The notes under the pieces were generated by a model. That model ran no database searches. It was not told the origin of the DNA and worked only from the letters and a program-made list of their open reading frames with translations. Source: Phallusia mammillata (taxonomy: Eukaryota). From it: a DNA stretch of 64,000 nucleotides. The DNA lies in NCBI GenBank assembly GCA_965637545.1, contig OZ281500.1, forward strand, positions 19,592,001 to 19,656,000, in the 5' to 3' direction. The translations under genes and the position numbers were made by a program. Shown piece by piece: positions 6,325-48,047 of this stretch (within the stretch, counting starts at the first letter, position 1; each line of letters starts with the position of its first letter).

Positions 6325-9300
6325 ATGAGAAAGTGGATGAGTGCAGTGCTGGTGTTGGCTTCGCTTTTCGGTGCTGATGCACAGAGATTTGACCCCACCA
6401 CGCTACCCCGTAAAAGAGTGTTTGTATTTGTAGCTAAATTATGTGTAGCTAAAATCAACTAAAAATCTGTGTTTTGTGCTTAAAACTAGTGACGCTGAAA
6501 AGGTTCGGGCCGAAACCGAATATTCGGCCACGAGGCGGAATAATTTCGGCCGAATCAGGCCGAACCTAAAATCCCCTTTCTTATGGATGTTTCAAATGAA
6601 CCTTGTGTTATTGATACAAGTAGCCTGAACTCAATTTTGACAAACTAATATCACTTTCACAATGTGTAGGCCTAAGCTTTACTAAACATCTAATACTTTT
6701 GCAGACAACGTGGCTCGTATTTTATAGATACAACAAATAGTTAATTTATGACGTTTCGTATGGGCGAAAATGAAACCTAAGGCCTTAAATCCATGCAATA
6801 AAAAAGTTCGGTGTCCGCCGTATTTTAAAAAAATTTGGGCCGAAACCGAAATAACTGGAAAACAATGGATTCGGCTGAAATGTTTCGGCCAACCGAAACT
6901 TCGGGGCATCACTACTTAAAACGTTCCACATCAACGGAACAATACAAGGGGTTCTTTATATTTTGCGAGTTAGTTTTAATAAAACATTTGCATTGAGACT
7001 AAACACCCTTTATCAGATAAAGTTGATGATCAGATGTTATTAATGTTTATTGTTTTATTGCGCAAAGTCTGTCCGACCGCCACCGCCGCATCGTGTGTGG
7101 ACAGATTCTGCACCGATGAATGTCCGGCTTATCCTGATGCATTCTGTTACAAAAGGGGTTGTGATGGAAATTGCGACTTGGCGGAATTTTTTATCAATGG
7201 AGTCAAGCTTGACCCTAAAATGTGCGAAGGTAAAATCATAGTCTTTACATACATACATAGAATCTATGGGCGAATTTAACAAAGAAATACCTTTAAAGTC
7301 ATTTCCATCAGCCAATTTGATCCTTAGTTCCATGATATTGCTGCAAATAGTTTTTAATGCTCTTTAATTCTTATTGCTTTGCAGTCGCAATAGAAATTAA
7401 ACCCACAAACAAGCAACAAATACGAGATTAGCCATGCGTCACGATTTGCAATGGCGCGTAAAACGATTTGTTAGTTGTTTAACGAGCAGTCCACAGGAAA
7501 GTTCTCACGTATATATTGCGCTGTACTCATAATTTGCTTAGAAACGCATGAGAATCGCTGCAATAACACGTTTTTGAAAAACCCACACGTCTCTGCGGAC
7601 CAATTAATTTTGTTTAAAGACATTTATGTATATGTTCTTTCACCAAGCAAAAATAACTGAACATGCATTTTGGTCCTAAATCGGTCACCGGTTGCACACT
7701 TTTGGCTTGGAATATTTCGTTTTGACATCAGTTAAACTTTCATAAATCAAAACCATTTAAGGTAAATAGTTTAGAGCCCAAAAACAATCAAAGAAATCAT
7801 TTAGGAGCTCTTTCGGTTCAAACACAAACCAAAAATCAATTTTTTAAAGAAACCTGCGCTGGAAAGTGGACGCCATGGTTAGACCGTGACAACCCTGGTG
7901 GTGTTGGGGATTTTGAAACCTTAGTGGAACTTCGTAAAGAGAGACCTGAGGTTATTTGTGATCGACCTTCTCTGATCCAAGCACAAACTCTTACCGGAGT
8001 TCCGGCAGGCCTTACTGGCCAAGTAACCTACAAATCTCTGACAGACGGATTTAAGTGCATAAATAATGACAACAAAGGACAATGCTTGGACTACAGGGTT
8101 CGCTTTTGCTGTGAAGACAGTAAGTAAAATAATAATGTGACATAATCAGAAATAAAATGATCACAACTATAAATCCTTCAAACACTTTTATCATGTAACC
8201 ATCTCTTGAAGCTTTTTTAATGTAGTTTTTGTGCCTAAAAGTTGTAAATATTCTTAACTAGTTAAATTAAATGTAAAAAAAAACTAGTGGGCCAAAAATC
8301 CCTAAAACCCAAAAGATTCATAACATTGACCATTTCTTTTCCCAACAGTTCCCCAATGCCCAGACAAAGCATGGACACAATTTTTCAATCGTGATCGCCC
8401 ATCATTAACATGTGATTGTGAAACCCTAAGCGATTTAAGAAGAGAATACCCTGACAAAATATGTGACAAACCAACAGCAATTGATGTAAGGGTATCAGCA
8501 ACGAATGAGCCCTATACCACAGCGGGCCAAGTGATAGCCCATGCTGATCCACAGAATGGTTTTCGTTGTAACAACGTCGGCCAGACATGCTTGGATTATA
8601 AAGTCCGATTTTGCTGCCCAGAAGGTAAGTTTTTAATGGGTAATATGGACCAAAACATCAATAGCAAAGTAAAGCTCATATCAGAACAAAATATTCTGGA
8701 TAGATTTAAAATTGGTAGTGTTTGTGGTATTCAGTATTGTTAAAGATGGTTAAGTGTAAAGGGTTAGATAAATAACTATATCTTGCAGGTGTTTAACACA
8801 GATATATATTGACCCAATTAATAAGCATGTGCAATTGATTAACTTGTAGCCAAAACACATTAATCAATGTGAGTAATATTAGCTTTTTATGGTGTTTAAC
8901 AATGTGGGCTTTTTCATTATGCCCAGTTTTAAACCATTTTTTTTTCCTTTAGTACCACCACCAACATGTGAAAAGGATGGATGGACACCTTGGCTCAATG
9001 TTGATGACCCCACTGGAGATTGCGATTGTGAAAGTACAAATGCTATTCGAGAGTAAGCAAATGTTTCATATAAATTTCTGATTTTTATCAACTAGTTTTT
9101 GACATAAAAATGTACTTTTTAACAGATCGGAATAAAATCTTTACAGTCTGATATTGTTATATAGTTCCTTTTTTTGAACTCCTTAGCTTTAACAGTGGTT
9201 AGCTCATTAGCATTATAAGAAACTAATGCTTTTTTTGTTTCATTGCAGCGCATATGGTGACCTACTGTGCAAAAACCCAACAGCTATCGATGCTAGAGTG

Positions 9301-32016: not shown

Positions 32017-33995
32017 CTGAACGGAGATTAAAGATGTGGTGATGATAGCGGAAAAAAATCAAACGGTTTTGTATCAGTCCGTTGTTAGTTAGGTATGTCC
32101 TTCACTGTAAATTATGCTGCAACAATCATCACTTAGTTAAAAGTTTAAGGACACAATAAATATATATTGCTTGCGCTGTTCAATATGTGTGAACAAACAC
32201 AAATGCGCCAAAAAGACCAATATTAACGGATACGGATCAATTATCTGAACTTAAAAATAAACTTAACCATGCACAATTTGGTAAAATATTACTAACGAAA
32301 GTTAGCGATAACAACCTTATCTTTACTCTAATTACTGCTAAATCAGCCCATATGTTAAACATGAGCTGCTTTTTACTAGCTCTGGCTTTCACTGCTTATC
32401 AAACCTACACTCACCGAAGGATAATGTTTACCATTGCACTTGTCAACGCCATCGAATCAAACTGGATCGAAATGTATATTGAAACACGGGCGTTCCTGTT
32501 GAAAGACGCGACCAAAAATGCCTTTAGCGAAAAGGTAAAACCGTTTCATATAAATCGATATTGGTGTGGATAATTGTTGACCTACTCTACGACGACTCGA
32601 GTCATTACACAATACCTTTGTCCTTGATATATTTACATTCGAAATATACCCTTACCCTTTTTATGCTTGCATTTGAAATCTACCCTTTGGCATTGTTAGG
32701 ATCATTTGCCTAGCAACGCAGTAAACATTTTTTTATATTCCGGAAAGGCCTATGTTTGAAAAACTGCAGTGGCAAACAAATGAAGTCACATCGTAATGCT
32801 GCTTCGGTCGAATAATCATGTAAAACAATGCATTCGGTCTGTTAAAAACAAAAGACAAGAAACGCTCTACTAAACAAATAAAATGTTAAATCTATGAGGA
32901 ATATCTACATACATACGTAACATATTTCACAACTCATACGAAAAGTCTGTTGCAACAACACCGGTTTTGGCATAGTTTAGATCCCGAGTAGGTCTATAAA
33001 ATTTTCAGTTTCGCTGAAGTTAATATCACAAAAAAGTCATAAAAGTAAGCTTTAAAACAGCAACAAAACAAACACGGAATATCAGAAAAGCAATTGATTT
33101 TGAAAATTGCACTTACATTCATACATTTACAGGATATGCATATAATAAGACGCATTGGGTAATAGTCAGTTTTTTTGTGCAGGGACACAGAAGGAATAAT
33201 CAACGCATCACTTGGGCTAAAATTTGCCGTAAATGTCTATGTAAAGACTAGTCTTTGAGCAAAACGATCGGATAAAATTCCCGTTAAACGTTTTTAATTT
33301 AAGCTTTTAGGCCTAACGATTTTGGGCACGTAGCTCCTAACCGAAAATACGCTTTTGTGTTTCTATTGATTGCCGCAGCCGTGTTTGGGCAACAACGGCA
33401 CCCTGTTGACCTGTGGTTTAAACGTCGTGTCGGGTCGCTTTAAAACTAAAGCTGTTTGGTTACTCCTATTTGTGAAAAGGAAATTGAAATTTAAGAATGG
33501 GATTTATGGAAGCAAATATTTTAATTTGAGTTGCTACTTTTGGCGTTTGCGATTTAAAGGCAAATTGTACAATGGTTTAAACAATATTTTTCCCCCAAAA
33601 AATAGCGGCATTAGCGTTTTCCAACAGCCAGGCTTTCCTATGCTTTAAACTTTCTTTGGGTTGTAATTATTTGTTACAAGATTTTTAAACACAAAATCAA
33701 GGCGTGGATTTTTATGAAAATGTATTGTAATTGCAAACTTACTGCTTAGGTTTACAGAACAGGTTAAAATTTGGCTACGGTAAATTGTAAATATATCACT
33801 TATTTGGATAAAAATGCTTTGTTTCATGATTTTAGCCGAAATGTAAGCCTAAAACGGAACCAAAAACAATTTTCCATAATTCAATTCTCTTATTGGCCAA
33901 AGTTGAAAAACCAAAACATTTTTTATTGCACATTCCAGCACCAGAATACATTTTACGCAGTGAACAAAAAACACCATAGCCATTGCTTCTCTATT

Positions 33996-36900
33996 TCACG
34001 CTCCAGGTTTTTTGGGTTTCCGTCGTTTCTTTGTCCTCGTGTTATTTGTCTTGCGCTCATCCGCCGTCGTAAACGTGATTCCCTGCGCATAATTTTCAGC
34101 GTAAAAGCAAACCACAGAAAAACATCTGTGGTGCGGAGTCCAATGTCTGGCAAATTTACGCGTGTGGTAAATTGATCGCCTATGACTACACTGAACCATT
34201 ACAAGGCTTACGGATGAAAACAACAGTGTCTTGCTGAAAATCGGAGCAACAGATTACGGTTTACGTCAGTGGTTTCCAACCTTTATCGACGAATTCCTCT
34301 CTTACCAATTCAATCATTTTCATTCCTCCCTAATAGACTACATTGTAGATGCTAAACCTTACAAAGACATTTAAAAATTGGATAATTTATCTAATTCTTG
34401 GGTTATATTCCCAATTGTCAATTTACAAACCATATGTACAAGCATTTTAAAAACGTGATTCATCGAGCAATCCATGCTACTAAACACTGACCTGTCGATC
34501 CAGATAATCCAAAAGGTCGTTGGCGTTGCAAGAAAACGTAGCTTCCTTCAGTAAAGCCTTAAACCTGCTTAAGTATATCGGTTTGTATCGCAAAATGTCG
34601 CGGTACAACAACACGTCATTGGTGATGACGTCGTGCATTAGCAAATCCAGCTCATCAGGGCCAGACGGTTTCAGCTTTTTCGTTTTGTGTTTCGATTGGG
34701 TGGGTTGTTGCTCTGGGGCGCCCTCTAGGTCTGACGTGCTTGTAGCACAAGGGATAAAGTGTGTCGTGTGAAGGTCTTCGATTTCACTGTAAGCGATAGA
34801 GCGACATCAAGAGAAAATTTACTTCTTGGTCAAGACTAAGGTTACTAGACGTCCGGAATTTACGCGTAAAATCTGTGTCCGAAAATATTTTTTTTAAATA
34901 CTTCTAATTAATGTCCTGAATTTTAGCGTCTAGTAACCTAACCTACATAGTTCAGACCTTTTTTTTTCTGGGGGAAAAGGTTTTTCGTTTTACCTATTGT
35001 CTGTGCAGTTGCTTGATGCAGCCTACACAGATGCAATCAGCATGAGTTTTAGCCTAAATGCGATTTGGTGTGTTTTTTTTTTATCTCGATAGTAATGTCA
35101 TTTTGCAAAAGAAACGGGACTATTTTGGTTGGTACCGTACAACAACAAGGTTAATAACTGAATATAACGCAAACTTTGCGTCGCCAAGCAAATTTTTTGA
35201 AAACCTCCAAAATTTTGCTATATGGTAACCCTATATTCTGGACTGAATGCAACGGCAGATAAGAATTAGGCCTACCCAATTTTACAACCAAATCATAGGT
35301 AAAAATGTTTTATATGCCAAGATGAACATATGCGGCAATGCGTGGGAGATTGGCTTGGTTCTGTATTACGTCCTAAAGCTTAGTGTGGTATAATCGGTTT
35401 TGCTTTGACAAATCAATTAAAAAAGCTAGATTAACTGGTGGGTGACAGTACACCTACCTTCCTTCATTGCCCACTTCTTCATCCGATGAATCCACGTTAA
35501 ACACTTCTGCAACTGCAACAACAAAAAACGCCACTAAAGAGATATCGTATTTCTAAACCAGTCAAATTACTTGTTTGCAACCTCTATGGATGCAAGCTTA
35601 TTTTTGTACGTTTTTAGGTTTGTAACATACCAAGATTTATTTGCCGAGCTACAGCCATTGACACGAATTTTTTAAACGTTTCTGAGACATTGGTATGAAT
35701 TTAATAACTGCAATATAGGTAAATAAACTGTACACAAAGAACAGTTGTTATAAAGCAGTGGTTCTTAACCTTTTTCATTGCTGCACCCCTTTTAAATCAC
35801 CAACCATTTTTCGCACCCCCTTCTGTAATTGTATTCGTATAGAATAGACCTAACCAACCTTAATGATTCAGCATCCCCGCACCCCCTAGGCACAGTTCTC
35901 GCACTCCTGGTTAAGAACCCCTGCTATAAAGTGTATTTGTGTCCTCTATTTTGTCAAAACCTTGTCCATCAACACAATCACAAATCTTGAGGCATAAGCT
36001 TTATTTTGGTCAAAGACAGCCGCAGTTGTTACAACGAACAGAAAAGAATCATAGAAAAAGAAAAGCTTCGTCAAAAACAAGTTCTAGAGGGTCAAAACAT
36101 AAGCCACGTCGTTGCATGGTACACTAGAAGGGAAGACACTACATGAATCAAAAATCATTGCCAATTTTGGCTAACCAATCTATGATGCCAATAGTGAGGG
36201 ATTGAGCCTGACCATTACTCGGTACACCGTGGGAAGTATGTCAAACATTTGATGTTGGAATGGTGCTATCGTTTCGTCGTTCACTACGCAGTTGGATAAT
36301 GCCTCCACTATTACTTGTTGTTTGTCCGAACACAAACTGTAAAATACAAAGACATGCATTTAGTCATAAATAAGCTACATAGAGTAAACACTGATTGAAG
36401 TTTGATCTATCTTGGTACACTACTAGTCCATACAGCCTATATCTGGTCACCAGAGAACCATAAGTTTAGGCTCGGTCTTTCAGTTGTCATGACGTGAATT
36501 TAAAGCAAGCCCAATTTTACCGTCGTTTACCTGCTTGCAAAGATATCACAAAGCATTCTACATAACAAAAAAATGCAATTGGGTGTCTCGCCCAAAAAAA
36601 TGCAAACGCTACTAGCGATTAAAAACCCGCCACACGATGTCGAAAACTAGCCCAATTGGGCGGGAAAACCGCCACCCTGGCAATACTGCATGCTTGTTTA
36701 TTTCGTAAAGCTAAAATTCTAATGCAGCTACTAGAAATACAGGCTACAGTACATGCTAAGGGCCCCAGCTGGGTTTAAACCATTTTTATCAGTTAAACAA
36801 AACCAAAGCCGTACGTCTCTGACATCAGACAGATAGTGCTCATTTAATAACCTGCTAAGTGTGGATACAAAGTAAACACGGTTTAACATATGATCCATAC

Positions 36901-39900
36901 CTGGCTAGTACAGTGAACTCAGGATTGTAGTGCGGTGAACCTGGCGTGACGCTGTTGAGCCACTTCTGAACGTCTGCACTTGAACCACGTGGTGTCCCCC
37001 TTGAGCACTCCCTGGCCCGCTGTAGCGCTTTCAACATCGTGCCGTTCTCGCGCATCCCGGTAAGCGCACGACGGATTAGTTCCTCGAATTCTGAGAAAAA
37101 GAAAGGAACAGTTTTGGAATTCTGGATATTTTTATTATGTTGTTAAAACGCAGGTAACCTTCTGCCATCTAAAAAGGTAATGAGGGGATTTGGAAAAGTG
37201 GTTTTCGTTTTTCATAGCCAGCGTAAGTAATTTGCACTTCAAGTAACATAAAACCTTTCAATCAGGTATTTACTCTATTTAACCACTTTTTACAGATTTA
37301 GGTACTCATACAGATGCAAAAAAAAAATCGATTTCGGCATTATTCATTATGAATTTTACATGCAATAATAAATTGTTTAAAAACACATGGTTGAAATTAC
37401 TGCTTTTTAACCGGTTACTCCCAACAATTTGTGTGTCATAATGTGACTACAGTAAACGTTAAATATCGTATTACCAGCTGCAATAGTTAGGCCTAATAAG
37501 TCGAAACAATATGACATATCTACAGCCAAATTACTGACTTCGAAAACTCAAAGGGTCTATTGTTTTAAAGCAGGCCAAAAATAAATCTAGTCCTACCTTG
37601 AAAGCATGGTTTAACCCAGTGGTTCTTAACCGGTGGGAAATTTAATGTTTTCGGAGGGAAATTATGTAAGCTTGAAAAGAGCAAACTCGGGCTCGATGGT
37701 CGAAACCGGCTTTGAATTAACCGTTGAAAGCTACATTACTACAAATTTTCTGCAACAACATGTAAGATTGATTTAGCCAAGGTTTACAAGACACATACAA
37801 GTCCAAAGACCGTTTGTTACATCACAGACAAGACTGAAACCATCAATGACTTTGCTGTTGTGCGCGAATAGAAGCCTTTCCTTTGTAGATTGTGATGCAA
37901 AAAATGACTAATGCAAGCACAGCAAGATCGACCTTTAGGATCCAGACCAAAGCGCTCCACAAAATTATGTCATTTAAAGAATATTTTTTTGTAAACATGA
38001 TTATAAAAATAACAGAGGGGGAAATTCGAAGTTGGTGATTGACTTTAGTGGGAAACCACACTAAAAAGGTTAAGAACCACTGGTTTAACCATACACAACC
38101 CACCCACCTGCTGTTGTCAAGCTCTCCAGGGCCTGTATCGCTCTTCGGGTGTGCTGCTCAGTTTTCATGATCTGTACTCGATCTAGTCAGTATAACAGAG
38201 CACAGCTCACTTATAAAGTCGTTACCTGTTATATAACGCCTACCAAGCGATGAGTGCAATGCGTGCAGTAGAATAACGCTCACAGCAAGCGAAACAGCTG
38301 CGACTGGGCGATTGCTCTTTGCACAGAGGGCGAGGAAATGCGTGGTGCCGTAGCACAAAATTACCAACCAACGGAACAGGCCATAGACACTATCGCACGC
38401 TGGTTTAATGCAAACTGTTACAGCCGCTATACTGTGAGTAAAATTATCCTGCTATTTCACACTAACGCGATTCACGAATAATTTTCGCACTAAAATCGTT
38501 TAATGCAGTGCGTTTTCCTATACCGCCCAGCAGTTGGCATTTCAAAACGCTTGTCAGTACAGATTGCATAAAACGAATTCGCCAAGCAATAAATCGACAA
38601 CAGTAATTGCAACCAAATGCTTGTGAAACTAGTAATTCTTAAACTGTCTGCCGGGACATACTTGTACGCCGTGAGAGATTTTCAAGTGTGTCGCTTTGCT
38701 TATTTAAAAGTGCAACTTTTTGTGGTGCTTGAGGACTTAATGGCGAAATACAGACATGCACAACAGCATTAAAAGCTCATTTTTTCGTTTTAATAAAAGA
38801 AGTCATCTATGTCATCAAAAAAGTTGCAAATTAACCTTCTTTGGACAACTATTGTGAAAGTGTGCCACAGAAAAAAGTTTAGCTTGTTAATGCACCACAT
38901 GCTTGACAAGTTTGAGAACCACTGGCTTAAAAAATTAAGTGACAATTTGTGGGGTTATAACGTATGGCAATGTCAACAGGAAACAGTTTAAAGATTATTT
39001 CATTGTTTCTTACTTGGACATGCCAAAGCAGGTCTGCTATCGTCGCTGTCAGATTCCACAACTTGCACCACTTTGTTGTGACGAGTTTTCACATTCGTAG
39101 GTGTATCGCTAGGGGGCGCTACATAACACAAATGAAATTTTCTAGAGAGCATTGAAATTTCAAAACACCGCCACAAATTACGTACAGACACAAAAGATCA
39201 GTTTTTTTTACTCAAGAATATAACATCCATAAACCTGGTCACAGTATACTCAATGTGAGGTAAGCGCGTGATAATTGAAAATGGTAAAAAAACCTTCATA
39301 CCCTGTATTTTTGCAGTGACGTTATTGGCACTGGTTTCTTCCTCGTCAGATGATATCACTTGGTGGCGGTATGCGTACAACTCTTTCAACTTGACCTTCA
39401 GTTTCTTCTTGCCAAGTGTTCGCTTGAGACCCATCTTTTGTCCCTAAACATTTCGTTTCAAAAATAAAATGCTGATCTCAGGCATTATTTTATATTTCGC
39501 TAAATCTGAAAACAAATTTAAGAAATGTATTGCGTTAACACGAGTTTAGTCACATTACGACATTACACTAAGGCAGTGGTTCTCAAACTGTGGTACGCCG
39601 GAACTTTTCAGGTGGTACGCGAGTAAAATTCTGTGATACCTAATTTAAGTTCAATTTAAAATTGCACCTCAACTGACCCAACTGATCAGCCCTGGTTTAG
39701 GCGATACTCGTGGTTTGGACAGTCTTTTGAAATTGCTAAATACGCTAAGTCGGTTCGAGAAAGTAGGCTTATTTCTAACGCTCTATTGAAACCGGGTTTA
39801 GGTCAGTGGCCTTCAACCTCAAAGGGATCCGCGAGATGGTTTCAGGGGTTCCATGCAGGCAAATATGTTTAGTATCATTTACCAACAGAAAAATATATTT

Positions 39901-42900
39901 AAGTTTCTCCACCGTTTTTACAATCCTGCATACAAATGCAAACTATTGATCACCCCTTAATTGGGCCAGAAACACTGAACAGTTACTTTTTGTGATTGTT
40001 TTTCCGATTGTGACATCATAACACACGTGGTCAAAAGACTTTATAGGACAAGTGTTATGTCAAGTTAAATAAATATACCAGAAAATGTATCAATTTGTTG
40101 TGTTGGCCGCTACAATACAGAAACTTCTTCGAAATTAAAGGACTGTGAAGGTGAATGAAAATGCTTCAAAAGCAGAATAACGTATAATGCAAGAAACGAG
40201 AAACATAAAAAGACCTGAAATAAGCTATTGCTGCCAGGCATAATGTATGACCATACATATATTGCTCATCCAGCAGGAAATTTGTCCTGCAAGTTATGTC
40301 ATTATCCTGATGAAGGCGTCTTGTATAGGACGTCGAAACGTCGATTGTTTACAATAAAACTGCTGGATGAGCAATACTTGGTCATAAAAAGACCTGTTGG
40401 TAATTACGTTGGGGGTCCGCAGACTTAAGATTTATAAAAGGGGTCCGTGACTACAAAATGGTTGGGAACCACTGGTTTAGGTGGTACGCCGCGATAGAAA
40501 AAGTTGTCAGGTGGTACGCGATCCGTATAAGTTTGAGAAACACTGCACTAAGGCTTTAAATCAAGATTTTTTTTCAGCGTGTGCCTTGCCATATTGGAAT
40601 GCTTGGGAAAACAGGTTGATTCGGTATACCGCCTTTAATAGTGCTGGCGTAATATGATTTATATATGAGTGCGTCGAGATCGCTTGCCTTAAAAGACGCT
40701 TCAGGGCTGATACCAGTAAGAGTGTATTCATCTCAGCTAGACTAAGGCATTGACCTATGAGATTGGGTTAGCTTTCATATACTTACAAGAAAAGATACAA
40801 AAAACAAATGGGTAAAAGGTACCTGTTTGACAATATTCGGTGTGTCCATGTCGCTGTAGTTCAGCATCGGCGTAAAAGGGACGTTTACGATCGAACGACG
40901 AGGTTTTCGGACAGGGACAGGAGTTTTGAAATTCGAGGGTTCTGGGGCGTCAACGGCTCCAGTCACGTGACCCACTGCAGCTGAGAGCAGCACAGAATCG
41001 TTGACGGAGAAATCAAACACGGGGGATGGGTCTGCGGGTGTTTTTATGTGGTCGGGCGGATCCCGAAATTTATATTTGGATGTGACTGGTTGTGAAAAGC
41101 TTGTTACAAACACTTCATCTTCAGGGGTGGCAACTTTGGCCGGCTGCGATTGCATCACGTCATCAGTGATGTCATCGATGTCCCTGACGTCATATTGGGA
41201 ATCAGAGTTGCACGGTCGCGGTTTTAACATCGGGGAGTTGAAGAGGTTTGGATGAGGGCTATGCGATGCGATAGACGAGAAGTCGTGAATGTCTGCGGGA
41301 GTGTCGTGCGCTGACACTGGAGGGCGCGTTGTTGACGATGGCGATTTTGGGGTGCTGCCGGTCATCCGACGAAACTTATGTCGGTTGCCTGGCAACGGGG
41401 TAAAATGTGCCGATCTGCGTTTGCTCGAAACCAAGGGACGGAATTCTTTATCCGGGACATTTGCGTTGGAACATGTAGCCTTGTCTACGTCACTGTCAAC
41501 GTTGGTGACGTAGATACGTTCGGTTTCGTCATCGTCCATTCGTATCTCTATGGATTCGTCAAGGCGACTTCGGAAATCTGTTAGACGTACTGTTGGGGAA
41601 CCCCCGCGAATAGAACCGCTGCAAGGGACTGGAGAGTCGTGAAAAAGATCGTCATCAGATGGAACAAACGAAGCAGGGGTTGGTTGGAAGTTGTGAGGCT
41701 GGGTTTCATCGCAGCTATCTGTAACACAGCAAAAAGATCGTTATTAAATGAAGATAAACGTAGAGTAGGCTAAACCTCGCTTAAACCGGATTTTGTTAAA
41801 CCGGATGTTAGCCTAATTCGGAGAAAACTTGAGGTATAAATGATTTGTAGTGTGGTAAGGCTTTAACTAATCGACATCGGTTAATCCAGATCTTAGCCTA
41901 ATCTGACATTTGTTTGTGTAATCGGGTCTGTATTAATTAAGGTTTCATCCGACATTACATCTACATGTCACGTTTATTTTCAACGGCAGAAAAAATTGAA
42001 ACAAAGTTACAATCAAAATGGATCCATTTAAGAAAGTAATCAACAAAAAATCAAAACCACGTACCAACTGGTTCGTCAAACTGCGACGCATTTTTTCTCT
42101 GTTCGTTATTGCATCCAAGTCGCTGGTACAACTCTTCTGCCTGCAATTTTGATATTTTCTTTAGCGACCCGGTGTAGATATGGTCAAATAAACATAGCAT
42201 CTCTTCTCTGTCGCAGCGCTGCATGTAATATATGCCACCCACACTTCCGTTCTCAAACACCTGCAGAGGCAAACATGACAAAGTCAATATTTACATACAC
42301 TGGCAATGGCTACAATTTAGCCTGGAAATGAAATCTTCATGTAAGTCAATTGTAGTAGGTGTGAATCTTTATGTAACTTATGACCACTGCTTGGCTACAT
42401 CACTGAATTCAATATGCAACGCAAAAGGCAATATGCAACGCAAAAGTGCAAATAGGGTGACCAAATGTTTAAAATTGAAATCACAAAACAGTAGATGAAA
42501 TAACAATTTCATGAGGAAAAGCGCATGAGTTTTTACAGTTGTCCTGATTTTTGGTGAATTGCATCTTAGGTTTTTTGACAAAGAAAAGATTTTCACCTAC
42601 GATAACTATGTACAAAAGACAATCAAAGGTTTCAGTTTTTTGAACTTTTTGTACTTGTTAAAGGTTTTTGAACACAAAATGGATGCTTATCCCTTTTTCA
42701 TGCTTACCTGTAACAGAGCAGGCATTCGACACAACAGAATGCATTTGTGCACAGCAATATCATCAGCACGGTCGTCATTAAATCTCAATGTCAAATCACT
42801 GTATGACTGGCAGTTCACAAGTTTGGAATAGTCTTGCTGAATCAATGAGTAACTTTCAGCCCTTGTTTCACCAAATGACGTGCCACTTATATTGGTTTGG

Positions 42901-45900
42901 TTGTTTTCTGTAGTTACTGCATGGTTTGATGCCATTTCTTCGCTTAGTTGATAGCTGTTGTTGTTATTGTTTTGTGGTGTCTCTGGTAAAATGTTACTAG
43001 TGTTTGTCCAAATAGGTTCTGATTGTGGATCCTCTTCATCAGACTGGAAAAAGTAAATTAAATATGGTAAAGTATGTTTAACTACTAATACATTTTATAT
43101 TAATACAATAGTTAATATATGCTACAAAAATAAACACTATTAAACTTCAAACTAAAATAAGTTACTCCTGCATTCAGATATAGCCACTTGGTAACCAGGA
43201 TAAGTAACAATAACAGACAATGGCCAAGATGGTTGAAAGGCTAATACGAAGGCCTTATACCCATAAGCTTACATGGTTTGAAGCATACTACAACTAAACC
43301 TAGCATAGATGCAGTGAGGCAGAAAGTTCGACAGTGCATTCATTGTAACCGTTGTTATCCCACCCACCAAGTATATATACACCACACATACAACAAACCA
43401 CCAACGACTTACAGCAGTAATATTAAGTTTCATATCATCTTCATGTTTATCAAAACTTGTTTCTGGAATAGCATGTTCAACAGTTGAGCCTCCCCCAAGT
43501 TCAATAAGTTGTTGCAAAGTTGAGTCTACATTGTCATCATTGTCAATCACCTTTAAAGACAAGTGTTATCCCTCTGATATGCTGTTTTGTATAGATTTAT
43601 ATCAGATGCATTATTAGCTAAAAAAATCTGAGTTACATGTTTGAATTGCACCATAAACATAGAACAGCATGTACACTCCTAGTTCATAACCTGTCTGGTT
43701 TCCGGTTAAAACAGATTTCCTTTCAAAAAATTTGGGCTGTTTACTGTGATTATAGTGACCCAAATTGGCGTATGCTTTATTATTTAAATCCTTCGACAAA
43801 TGCTCATGCCATCATCAGGGATATAAGGGGTCACACTAATTACACCCATTTTGTGGGCTGTGCCTGTGACACTACAATTAAAGTAAATTACTGTCAGTGA
43901 CCATTTCACAGTGCACCAAAATTCACACACAAAAATTCTGAGTACTGAATAAAAAAGTTGGGGACCCTCTGGATTAATTAAAGTGCTTAAATGCTCATTT
44001 TTTACCAGTGTTTCTACACATCCTGTGATTAATTACACACTGTAATAGTGTTGGCATAAGTGGACAGAAACCAAACTATACAATACCTGATAAAGCAATT
44101 CTTTGTCTTCAATGGCATCAGGACAATCAGGAATATTTTCTGGGATATCTACAGCCCTTTTCGGTGCTGGTGAATCAAACTGTGTGAGCAGGCCGGATAC
44201 TCGGTAATCTACAGAACATGAACTCTTTCCACCACTCAAGCCCCATTTGCTGTTTGCAATAGATTGGAACTTATTGGACACGGGTGCATGCTCCTCATTG
44301 GCCTGCGAAACAATGGCATGTTGTTATGATTGACTTTAATTATCAGTATTACATGTAGCAACATCCTTTCAATAAAATCAGTTGCCACATACTATGTGAA
44401 GCAATACATGAAACTTATTAAGCATCATGTTTTAACAACATTTAAATTCAAGAGAAATACAACATATATTTACTGAATCAATTTCGTTTGCTTGTTTTAT
44501 GTCTGTTTGGTCATCAGTTCCATTGGCAAATCCTTTTTCACTAAAGGTAGATTGTGGTAAAACAACAAATGGTTTCAGATCATCTGTGGCTTCTGGCGTG
44601 TCCTTCAAACTGTTGTCTGAATGTTTTTCCCATTTACTTGCCAATGGTATTACTGGTGTGCAAGGAACCTCACAGTCATTAGCTTTAAACACAAAAGCTC
44701 TATTTGGCAACAAGGTGTAACTTAAATGTCAAAAATCCTTCCTGTTGAGTCTAAAACCAGCAGAATTTAATGCTCTTGCTGCCATGAAGGGTGTAAATAC
44801 TTGTAAATATAGTACAGTAAAAGTACTCTTTCCAAACAGTTGAACATGGTTTAGATAAATGACTATGTAAATTTTATGCAAAACAATGTACGTTTTTTTG
44901 GATTTATATGCATGACATGCTATGATTAACAATTAACAACAGTTTTATTACTTGAAGTTGCTGCATCATCAGATTTTCCAATCATTTGTGCCAGTTTAGT
45001 TTCCAAAGCAGCTTTTCTAGTAGCTGGACTATCCTGGAGCATTACAGGCACTCCAATTTCTTTTTTTCTGTAGAAATAAACAACTATTAAGTAAAAAAAA
45101 TGTTTTACATCCAAAATCAATAATAATATACCTTAATTTTTCTTCTCTTTTTGAGCGTTTTCTTTCATCATCCTCTGACTTAGACAAAGCTTTAGCTACC
45201 TGTAGCATAAAATAAATAATTTACCTCTGAACCACGTTTTTGGCGTCAGAGGTTTTAGTGGGATTAGGATATGGGGTCGTACTCTTTCAATGCAAGGATT
45301 TTTATCCAACTCAGTCTAATTTCTGGTGTCCTTATGAACACAGTAAAAGTGTACCTTTTACTGGTGAATCACGTAAAAGCCCAATAAATGGACCCTTAGA
45401 CATGCACAGATGTAATTGGCACCAGAAATTGCAACTTTTAGTTGTAGGCTTTATAGATACCAGTGTTCTGAGAGATTCTGAGTAACTACCAGAAAAAAAT
45501 CCTAGGAGCCAAAGTTGGCGCCCTAGTACTACTATGTGTAGGTCCTTATACCATCCAATGCTGCATTAAGGAAATGACACATTCTTTGATTTGCATTCCA
45601 GTAAAAATTAGTTTCATTGCACAGACCGTGAAACTACTTATTAAACATTCACTGTGTGTTCCTGAGTTTACACAAAATGATTATTTTTTCAAACACAACG
45701 GTTATTCTTAACAGTTTAATATAATTTACACACTTGTAAAATTTCATCCTCTGCATTCCTGGGTACTTTTGCAGTTCTTTTTCTTCTTTCTCTTTTTTCT
45801 TTGCCAGCTTTCTAAAATGAAATGCAATTAAAACAATTTGGAAAGGTTTAAAGAATCAAAAAACCTACAGAACTTGATGGCCCAGTGCACGACTGTACAT

Positions 45901-47183
45901 GCCGTTTTAAACCTCCCTTAGTCTTCAGTGTTTTTCCACATTTTGAACAAGTATTAGGATCAGATTGAGAAGCATTTCCTGACACCTTTAACTGCTTTAG
46001 TCTTATTTTCGGTGTACTTCTGTTCGGTGATTGACTAGTACCAAAGTTGTTGTTGTCAAGACACCTTGTGCAATTAAAAAAACAGTTAAACCAAAACAGC
46101 ATACTCAAAACAGTTTTGGAGGCTTTGAGATTTGTTAGAAAAGCAATAAACCATCCATTAAGCGCCTTTCAATAAATAGCATGTTCACACTTTATTGGTC
46201 TTTACACTCTTTAACCAGCGTTTCTAACAGAACAAAATTATACAGACAAAAGCTTCTTTGTGTGAAATATGCATTTGTTGGGACCTAAGTGCAATGTGTT
46301 TGCAGCTTTGACATGTCCAATCATGAAACTAATTTTGTGCCTTTATTGGTTGTAAATGGCATACAATACATCAACTGCGAACATTTCACAAAGCAAAAAC
46401 TTTTACTGATATATGTTATCATATCCAAACCAGTTGTCACCAGTAAAATCCTAGATGTAAAGGTGATTTTAATTTAACTAAAACATTTACCTACCTGTTG
46501 ACATGGGATTGTCTAGCAGATAAAGTACGCCCAGCCAAGTCTTTGTGACAACTCGGGCAAGGCACCTTGCCTCTTTTTATCTCGTCATTATTCCCTTGCT
46601 TAAAGTAAGAAGATGTCACTGGTTCGTCACCAACTTTTTCAACATTTTTTTTATCTTTGCTTGGACAGGTCTCACAATGATCTTGGTAACTTTTAACATC
46701 AACCAATTTTCCACAGTGTCCACATGTTAGTTTCCTTTCAATTCTTAGCTTTAAATCCTTCTTTGATGCAAAATTTTCTGCCATGCAGTTTATGTAATGT
46801 GTCTTACATTCTTCAGCTGGTATCTTCTTAGAACAAATCTTACAAAAACCGCCTGGTGAATAATTTTTATCAGTTTCTTGGGATACCGGTAAGCAAACAT
46901 CTTTATTAAGATTTTCTTTTTGCTCAACATTTAGAGGAACTGCTTCTTTATTATGCCTTTCTTCAGTGACACCACTATCATCACTTAAGTCAGGTATCCC
47001 TGAAAGTGTGTCATTGTTTTGAGTTGAGGATTGTGGAATATTGTTGTGGTAATCCTTTGGTATATTTGGTGTGTCTGAATCATTTTTATTTGCCAGTGGT
47101 GATATGATTCTCCTTTTTCTTGACAAAAACAGTTTTTTCTTTGACAGGCTGGGCAACTCAAAAGCTTCCATTGAGTCATCCAT
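33996..47183 (-). CDS. SLX4: Structure-specific endonuclease scaffold SLX4 (FANCP/BTBD12) homolog, about 1273 aa, 16 coding exons
   Basis: Exons 47183-46495, 46064-45869, 45811-45734, 45199-45132, 45067-44952, 44682-44474, 44302-44087, 43550-43413, 43043-42708, 42260-42065, 41718-40823, 39443-39302, 39118-39014, 35512-35458, 34786-34492, 34082-33996; total 3822 nt, phase-consistent. Domains: UBZ fingers, EDEILQVAKALSKSE and LQDSPATR motifs, MLR (KWGLS..DYRV), BTB (SDL..VHKCILLCR), SAP (TPMLNYSDMDTP..KLKELYAYRHQ), SBD (LYRDILRYKPI..LLDYLDRQGITFTTA). Confidence 0.93.
35756..35923. mobile_element. hAT MITE
   Basis: CAGTGGTTCTTAACC / GGTTAAGAACCCCTG termini. TSD TTATAAAG / CTATAAAG. Confidence 0.85.
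36180..38168 (-). CDS. Unknown 135-aa protein, spliced gene nested in SLX4 intron 13 (same strand)
   Basis: Exons 38168(38182)-38108, 37090-36901, 36336-36180 have canonical splice sites and phases 1 and 2, forming one ORF: MKTEQHTRRAIQALESL..EFEELIRRAL..KWLNSVTPGSPHYNPEFTVLARLC..VYRVMVRLNPSLLAS*. Candidate upstream exons at 38448-38226 and >=38662. The start codon is uncertain. Confidence 0.65.
37617..38082. mobile_element. hAT MITE in an intron of the nested gene
   Basis: CAGTGGTTCTTAACC / GGTTAAGAACCACTG perfect TIR. TSD GTTTAACC. Confidence 0.92.
40218..40382 (+). mobile_element. 165-bp hammerhead-containing non-autonomous retro-insertion (Penelope-like or retrozyme-like)
   Basis: Flanked by the 14-bp direct repeat CATAAAAAGACCTG (40204-40217 and 40383-40396). 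Internal 17-bp perfect inverted repeat (40260-40276 / 40360-40376). AATAAA at 40353. Confidence 0.8.
40301..40348 (+). ncRNA. Intact minimal type I hammerhead ribozyme motif
   Basis: CTGATGA (40307-40313), an extra A, 8-bp stem II GGCGTCTT/AGGACGTC with a GTAT loop, GAAA (40335-40338), palindromic ACGT stem III, GUC triplet (cleavage predicted after C40342), short stem I ATC/GAT. Confidence 0.8.
43788..43818 (-). ncRNA. Degenerate hammerhead motif (family B)
   Basis: Minus strand CTGATGA-T-GGCATGAGCATTTGTC-GAAG. Shares TTTAAATAATAAAGCAT downstream with the 22646 copy. Confidence 0.5.
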
Positions 47184-47733
47184 GTTGTACAATTATTGCA
47201 CAGATTTATTAAAACTTTTCTGAATTTCAACACTACTATTACTCATAGTAACAGTAACCTTCCGGTTGTAGGCTGTTGTACAGAACAAACGTCTAAAATT
47301 GTCAGAACTCCGAGTTTAAAGAGAAATAACCCACGGGATGCACACAAAAACGCTAAATTAATGTAAAAGCGGCTTGCACTCATGTGTCTCAATTAAAAAT
47401 CATAACTGCAACACAATATAGCTTTCTAGTTTATGATTTGCATTTTGCGAATCTGAAGGAACAACAATAAAGCCACGAGTCTCGCGCCGTTTATGGAGGG
47501 GAATTCCCGAATAAAATTGTAATATTTATTAATGATTAATTTTTAAATTCTATAGCCATCGCTGTTTTCTTTTTCTAGAATGGCAAAGTTTTTGAGTCAA
47601 GAAGACTATTAATCAGGCCAGAACCACTAATGCTACCATACACTATTAAAACTTTACAGTTTTCAACTTTTCGGTTGAGAAAATTTTAAGTCAGTTCGAG
47701 TAGGCCTACTGCTTGTGTAGCCTACGCTTAAAA

Positions 47734-48047
47734 CAGTGGTTCTCAACTCGTTTCAGGCCATGGACCACCGGCCCAGTAAAAATAATATCGTGAACCATTT
47801 CATTCTAGACTCTAGAATCTAGAGCAAGTTGGGGTAACGCATACGAAACAACCGTTTGGACTTAACATAATCCTTTGAAACTAATTTTTAGGAGGTGAAA
47901 TAAATTTTTAACAGGTAACATTTTGGTACTCCTTTAACATGTAATATGCAATCCACTCTAGTTTATCACTTAATTTAGTGGACGTCCTGTGGACCACCCA
48001 AAAAGTCATCATGGACCACTAGTGGAACCAGCAGTTGAGAACCACTT
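47734..48047. mobile_element. hAT MITE (same family as 60464-60754)
   Basis: CAGTGGTTCTCAACT termini with extensive identity to 60464-60754. Confidence 0.85.

Follow-up and report, generated by a model that had tools for sequence, protein, structure and literature searches.

SLX4 (BTBD12, FANCP) is a scaffold protein with a C-terminal SAP motif and an SLX1-binding domain (SBD), and serves as a platform on which the nucleases XPF-ERCC1, MUS81-EME1 and SLX1 are assembled; the set of nucleases which it carries decides the cutting of crosslinks, stalled forks and Holliday junctions. Engineered SLX4 mutants devoid of the SBD are used in the DNA-repair literature. Two further systems are close to the case described here: alternative last exons with intronic polyadenylation, which are general in animals, and the same-strand nested genes and operon-like units of tunicates, which are resolved by trans-splicing; tunicates trans-splice a short leader onto many of their mRNAs. 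The present report concerns the SLX4 gene of Phallusia mammillata, located in a 64,000-nucleotide stretch of DNA (hereafter the window; GenBank assembly GCA_965637545.1, contig OZ281500.1, positions 19,592,001 to 19,656,000 of the forward strand), and in particular three alternative terminal exons, E1, E2 and E3, which lie on the same strand as the host gene, ahead of the exons encoding its SBD.

The original prediction, made from the sequence of the window, had offered two readings of these exons: an in-frame alternative C-terminus of SLX4, or an independent nested gene with non-coding exons of its own further upstream. The first was supported and the second, in that form, was not. Our preferred explanation, to which we assign a probability of about 0.72, is that E1-E3 form an alternative last-exon cassette of Phallusia SLX4 which replaces the SBD, yielding an isoform which would be without SLX1 docking and whose new tail may act as a protein-interaction module.

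Exon structure and reading frame

All coordinates are window positions; the gene lies on the minus strand, and its exons were read by minus-strand translation. Twenty public runs from the same organism contain parts of the stretch, and the contigs of four of them, originating from four studies, were mapped on 34050-39950; the RNA data used here are assembled contigs from these Phallusia runs. The second species referred to below is ascidian-like and represented by four Joint Genome Institute (JGI) metagenome contigs, L001-L004 (L004 is 22 kb long and 99.7% identical to L001), and P0001 is a public Phallusia protein described in a later section. The elements of the 3' part of the gene are as follows.

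39302..39445, minus strand: SLX4 exon with the SAP-like motif ..GLKRTLGKKKLKVKLKELYAYRHQV.., common to both isoforms; joint 39302/39118 in 4/4 runs; 62-63% identical to the second species
39014..39118, minus strand: last exon common to both isoforms, frame checked; the two branches part at its phase-1 donor, 39014, which is joined to 38182 in 4/4 runs and to 35512 in 2/4
38108..38182, minus strand: alternative exon E1, 75 nucleotides (nt), phase 1 in and out; joints 39014>38182 and 38108>37090; residues 453-477 of P0001; probable homologue at L001 7609-7689
36901..37090, minus strand: alternative exon E2, 190 nt, 62 full codons; joints in 4/4 runs; 44% identical to the second species, with equal length and phases
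36180..36336, minus strand: coding part of the alternative terminal exon E3, 51 full codons and TAG; joint 36901>36336 in 4/4 runs; 61% identical to the second species
35977..36179, minus strand: 3' untranslated region of the alternative isoform; sole AATAAA at 36005-36000; contig ends at 35977 and 35987
35458..35512, minus strand: acidic 55-nt exon (..VDSSDEEV..) with which the canonical SBD branch begins; runs X7 and X17 contain joints 39014>35512 and 35458>34786; frame checked
34492..34786, minus strand: canonical SLX1-binding domain exon; Pfam Slx4 (PF09494); 51% identical to the second species
33996..34082, minus strand: last coding exon of the canonical isoform, GITFTTADERK.. followed by TGA; joint 34491/34081 (cut +1) in 4/4 runs; frame checked; kept in the second species

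Minus-strand translation reproduced the coordinates and phases predicted for the three exons (38182-38108, 37090-36901 and 36336-36180), as well as their own stop, with every intron of the GT-AG type. An open reading frame (ORF) of 135 codons starts at the ATG at 38168-38166 in E1 and ends at the TAG at 36182-36180 in E3; when E1-E3 are read from acceptor 38182 in the phase of donor 39014, they encode 141 residues. Donor 39014 and acceptor 38182 are both of phase 1, and the fusion reads ..ALACP-N-RVQIMKTEQ.. in frame. In the assembled exons both branches following 39014 are open in frame, the alternative one for 141 amino acids and the canonical one for 146. Contigs covering E3 pass its stop codon and end at 35977 and 35987, 13-23 nt beyond the sole AATAAA, which suggests that the poly(A) site of the alternative isoform is situated near 35980.

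The two competing acceptors are of different quality. Acceptor 38182, the proximal one, is in use and has a poor pyrimidine tract (..ctgttatactgactag), whereas the distal acceptor of the SBD branch, 35512, is preceded by a strong one (..gttttttgttgttgcag). This difference suggests that use of the cassette may depend on regulation or on kinetic, first-come splicing.

Both branches are present in RNA

The joints 39302/39118, 39014>38182, 38108>37090 and 36901>36336 were each found in all four runs, all with GT-AG borders. Two contigs tie E1 to the upstream part of the gene: X5#18 (1137 nt) contains E1, 39014-39118 and 39302-39445 and continues upstream, and X1#7 (1470 nt) contains the same three exons together with further upstream sequence, and extends into E2 by 27 nt. 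At 39445, the loose end continues into a large exon ending with ..DMDTPNIVK. As these E1-linked contigs reach the upstream SLX4 exons, the fusion is a real mRNA. Two of the four runs (X7 and X17) contained the competing joint, 39014>35512, and after it 35458>34786, so that one and the same donor is seen in RNA spliced to two acceptors. The SBD exons were covered in 4/4 runs and, together with both joints, this indicates that both isoforms are made.

Mean contig depth was 64-390 over E2-E3, 8-73 for the upstream SLX4 contigs and 4-10 over the SBD exons. The alternative 3' end is not rare, and it appears to be the more abundant of the two by contig depth, a weak measure which cannot rank parts of a gene.

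The region 38187-38777 had zero contig depth in all four runs, bearing in mind that contigs may miss rare forms. It is in this region that upstream non-coding exons had been proposed for a nested gene (donor 38661, acceptor 38448, and a 43-nt intron from 38226 to 38182). The check suggested for distinguishing the two readings was to compare the junctions from 38226 and from 39014 to acceptor 38182; the former was not seen in the contigs of any of the four runs and the latter was found in each, and the proposed exons are thus unsupported.

The host gene is SLX4

The identity of the host gene follows from the SBD exon (34492-34785, minus strand), which matches the Pfam family Slx4 (PF09494) with an E value of 2.3e-9 and a score of 37.5 bits, above the cut-off of 24.8, and which is tied to the upstream exons by RNA joints. 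The canonical branch ends in ..LDYLDRQGITFTT.., presumably as in other SLX4 proteins. Further upstream, a BTB match was weak (E 0.075, under the cut-off, on a partial exon), and Cys/His motifs of the UBZ type are visible in the ORF at 46491-47192, with no Pfam match for them. Pfam SAP gave no match on 39198-39434; the basic helix of exon 39445-39302 is SAP-like and, in our assumption, resembles the motif of human SLX4, without confirmation from Pfam. This SAP-like motif (..KLKVKLKELYAYRHQ..) is conserved at 62-63% in the second species.

A public protein carries the fusion

A HMMER search of 1.84 billion representatives with E2 returned two proteins, P0001 and P0002. P0001 (CAB3263123.1; UniRef A0A6F9DJJ5), a 592-residue "uncharacterized protein LOC101243343 [Phallusia mammillata]", is 100% identical over E2. 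It is colinear with five SLX4 exons, in window segments 42266-42060, 41719-40823, 39443-39302 and 39118-39014, followed by E1, E2 and E3, and differs from the alternative coding sequence derived from the window by a single residue, K/E at 39074. The fusion transcript is already public, though without a name, and annotation of E1-E3 as a separate gene is not warranted without 5'-end evidence.

The differing residue lies in the shared SLX4 exon. At 39074 the window has T on the plus strand, giving Lys in ..TRHNKVVQ.., whereas C, and with it Glu, is found in 4/4 RNA runs and in P0001; the two readings probably represent different alleles.

Literature searches at the level of titles and abstracts (SLX4 isoform or polyadenylation, SLX4 in Ciona, Phallusia spliced leader) yielded nothing relevant, and at this level no description was found of a natural SLX4 isoform of the cassette type.

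The cassette is conserved in a second species

P0002, the second protein returned by the E2 search, is an 84-residue ORF fragment on L001-L003 and is 44% identical to E2. A metagenome scan with E3 brought back contigs of the second species only. In this species the order of the elements is the end of the large SLX4 exon, the SAP exon, an exon with a phase-1 donor, E1, E2, E3 with its stop, and the SBD exon, the three cassette exons being positioned as follows.

L001 7609-7689: putative E1 of the second species, 81 nt, phase 1 in and out, without ATG
L001 8460-8649: E2 of the second species, 190 nt, the same length as in Phallusia
L001 8983-9139: E3 of the second species, 51 full codons and stop, as in Phallusia

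The lengths of E2 and E3, their splice phases and the position of the stop are identical between Phallusia and the second species, both in L001 and in L004. Amino-acid identity is 44% in E2 and 61% in E3, as compared to 51% in the SBD exon. An unbiased comparison, in which all window ORFs of at least 15 codons within 33000-48000 were matched against L004, revealed eight blocks conserved in colinear order on the strand of the gene, including E2 (3e-16), E3 (8e-19), BTB, SAP and SBD, in addition to scattered weak matches and matches in overlapping frames. Between 39014 and 34800, only two weak and out-of-order ORF matches to L004 (E ~0.01) were obtained besides E2 and E3.

Nucleotide identity between the two species at codon positions 1, 2 and 3 was 0.60, 0.65 and 0.42 in E2 and 0.67, 0.76 and 0.37 in E3; 34 of 59 identical residues use different codons; and the ratio of nonsynonymous to synonymous substitutions (dN/dS) was between 0.18 (maximum likelihood) and 0.25 (NG86), with dS saturated. 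The remaining two frames contain stops and show ~24% identity. The codon pattern and a dN/dS of ~0.2 indicate that the frame of the cassette is under purifying selection. With this codon-level conservation, and with joints in four runs from as many studies, the exons stand beyond chance.

In the second species, E1 has an open frame in the SLX4 phase; directly before its GTGAGT donor it reads ..IKAFETLTTE, at the place where Phallusia has ..AIQALESLTTA, and the position of the Phallusia E1 Met is occupied by Lys. Of 121 phase-compatible candidate exons this one gave the best match, with a score reached by 51 of 2000 shuffles. Homology of the two exons thus has moderate support from sequence similarity, helped by their identical anchoring at the donor. 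As E1 retains a conserved peptide without a start of its own, and as the host donor is of phase 1 in both species, it can be argued that E1 belongs to the translated sequence of SLX4.

Motifs common to both species include ..ARxxxxGxxRGSSxD..W.N...PG...Y.PE..VL.. in E2 and ..PFQxxMFxILPxVYRVMxRLNP.. in E3.

Two further features were observed in the second species. The acceptor of its E1 is a tandem, tttCAGCAG (L001 7603-7611), and alternative use of its two acceptor sites, which lie 3 nt apart, could lengthen or shorten the protein by one residue at this joint. Its E1-E2 intron contains a duplicated block (~7956-8020 and 8106-8170, within L001 7950-8170), 100% identical, with short CGCTCCTCTCCTTG-like repeats; a 114-residue 'gene' called at L001 7950-8170 by the metagenome pipeline is probably spurious.

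Nature of the tail

The protein encoded by the cassette had not been recognized in the original prediction, and searches of Pfam, PDB and Foldseek likewise returned no relatives. Pfam gave no match on E2, E3, the 135-residue tail or the whole of P0001, even at an E value of 10, and no meaningful hit was obtained when the sequences of PDB were searched with E2, E3 and a two-species profile (best E 1.2). Word searches of the 135-residue tail against proteins of 74-236 residues, of P0001:452-592, and of whole P0001 against proteins of 325-1036 residues returned P0001 alone; SLX4 proteins longer than 1036 residues were covered solely by the E2 search of cluster representatives.

An AlphaFold2 model from a shallow alignment was all-helical and unusable (predicted local distance difference test, pLDDT, 44.7). 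In single-sequence mode P0001:474-592 was modeled as a six-helix bundle with a pLDDT of 67.9 and a predicted template modeling score of 0.52, a level reached by one of five models. A Foldseek search of PDB with the tail model gave hits at noise level (best E 1.6), and the best hit of a wide VIA-align search, to the C-terminal domains of filovirus VP30 (Z 4.7), was far under the noise level quoted for helical bundles. The tail is thus left without a fold assignment and is predicted to be all-helical.

Within a predicted helix of E3, ..MFDILP.. (window 36240-36226) corresponds to ..MFHILP.. (L001 9071-9085), a conserved F-x-I-L-P. We take this putative five-residue motif to be loosely like the F/Y/H-x-L-x-P peptides which bind the TRFH domains of telomere proteins.

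MITE-like repeats

The window also contains repeats resembling miniature inverted-repeat transposable elements (MITEs).

37616..38083, no strand assigned: MITE-like insertion in the intron between E1 and E2, outside the coding unit; its inverted termini are CCAGTGGTTCTTAACC

This copy fills much of the E1-E2 intron. A second MITE-like copy is found at 35755-35924, just beyond the alternative poly(A) site, and MITE-like termini also occur near 38910, 40460, 10607 and 60463. The terminus has 8 matches in the window, compared to 0.01 expected. Loose ends of RNA contigs at 37993 and 38088 indicate that other MITE-like copies are transcribed elsewhere.

Proposed mechanism and points against it

According to the preferred explanation, after the end of the shared exon at 39014 (phase 1) the spliceosome would have a choice of two acceptors. 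The proximal choice, 38182, would lead through E1, E2 and E3 to the stop at 36180 and the AATAAA at 36005, with the transcript ending near 35980, and the distal choice would skip ~3.5 kb to acceptor 35512 and the SBD exons. The proximal isoform would keep the shared upstream exons, from the weak BTB-like match through the SAP-like exon, and a 141-residue helical tail would take the place of the 146-residue SBD tail. Judging from the role of the SBD, such an isoform would be unable to dock SLX1, and its tail may function as a protein-interaction module, recruiting a different partner or regulating the scaffold. The choice of the last exon would in this manner toggle SLX4 between SLX1-bound and SLX1-free forms. 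The observations on which this explanation is built are the two joints, the open frame of either branch, the public protein with the fusion and, in the second species, a layout, phases, lengths and stop maintained under purifying selection; it is also the reading of an in-frame C-terminus replacing the SBD for which the original prediction had allowed, and the 39014>38182 joint in 4/4 runs and the contigs extending into SLX4 bore it out.

Several points weigh against this explanation. In every run the E2-E3 contigs were 3-8 times deeper than the upstream SLX4 contigs, which may reflect either 3' bias or an additional, shorter mRNA. The expression evidence consists of assembled contigs whose RNA status was guessed, though their spliced joints show RNA, and contigs cannot reveal 5' ends or spliced leaders. 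The Phallusia E1 contains an ATG 14 nt past the acceptor, with A at -3, a good context. The E1 homologue of the second species was identified by similarity (the 51 of 2000 shuffles above), and all the RNA is from Phallusia. Finally, the isoform is known from RNA contigs and conservation, and the function of the tail is purely what we infer.

Alternative explanations

Some of these points favor the best-surviving alternative, an independent nested gene, which we nevertheless regard as unlikely. In this scenario acceptor 38182 would be mainly a spliced-leader trans-splice site, giving rise to a short mRNA and a 135-residue protein starting at the ATG at 38168; the cis-spliced fusion would arise alongside it, as a by-product or a further product, and the two could coexist. 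The position and context of the ATG and the excess depth of E2-E3 in all four runs are compatible with such a gene, and no unspliced RNA was found upstream of 38182, which fits a 5' end made by splicing. On the other hand, no conserved start codon of its own was found for such a gene: E1 of the second species is without ATG, yet the end of its peptide is conserved and it is open in the SLX4 phase. The phase match with the SLX4 donor holds in both species, the word search revealed no stand-alone homologue of 74-236 residues, and the sole public protein with the tail domain is the fusion. No loose end at 38182 was present among the loose ends listed, with the reservation that contigs drop short tips, and the zero coverage of 38187-38777 argues against an upstream exon or a transcription start there. 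A nested gene with upstream exons of its own, as originally envisaged, is not supported, on the same grounds of coverage, start codon and homologues.

Very improbable is the possibility that the tail arose from the SBD by internal duplication and divergence, and that the isoform still binds SLX1 or an SLX1 paralogue. Both are helical C-terminal modules of like size, and hhalign detected a faint similarity over 19 columns (QMFDIL..YRVMVRLNP vs LMHDVI..YRDILRYKP); however, the hhalign probability was 0.2% (E 0.25), on which basis this reading was rejected, and Pfam Slx4 had no match on the tail even at an E value of 10.

Splicing noise, namely a cryptic set of terminal exons such as an exonised intron or repeat with a product devoid of a role, would agree with the lack of known domains or of relatives beyond the two species and with the MITE insertions nearby, but is hardly credible in view of the conserved exon lengths, phases and stop, the 44-61% identity with a saturated third position and a dN/dS of ~0.2, a conservation equal to that of the SAP and SBD exons, joints in all four studies, and exons which are clear of the MITEs.

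Significance and comparison with known systems

SLX4 with an alternative last-exon cassette has been seen so far in two ascidian-like species. A natural, conserved isoform in which the SLX1 dock is swapped for another domain would show that the nuclease set of SLX4 can be rewired by RNA processing. The orphan domain offers a means of identifying a new partner of SLX4 in a chordate amenable to experiment, and a correction of annotation is called for, as the public Phallusia record bears an "uncharacterized" label yet carries an SLX4 fusion. A bolder version, which we put forward tentatively, is that of an ascidian SLX4 with a swappable tail: a regulated choice between two conserved cassettes, one an SLX1 dock and the other a helical domain recruiting another partner, possibly a nuclease or a regulator, into an SLX1-free complex with a function of its own. 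The same acceptor might also release a free 15-kDa protein by trans-splicing.

The Phallusia protein resembles the SLX4/BTBD12 (FANCP) scaffold in its weak BTB-like match, its SAP-like exon and an SBD exon scoring over the Pfam gathering threshold, and departs from it by possessing a second conserved terminal cassette, through which the SBD is lost and an orphan helical domain is gained. With the alternative last exons of other animals it shares a single donor (39014) serving two acceptors, the proximal of which leads to its own stop, AATAAA and contig ends; unlike them, it has a cassette of three exons, and these encode an entire domain, conserved and subject to purifying selection, in place of a short tail that truncates the protein. 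An acceptor followed closely by an ATG inside a host intron recalls the tunicate nested genes and operon-like units, but here cis-splicing to the host donor was directly seen and the ATG is not conserved. Similarly to the engineered SBD-less SLX4 mutants, the isoform would keep its other partners with the SLX1 dock absent; in Phallusia, however, the loss is natural, occurs via RNA processing, and is paired with the gain of a new domain.

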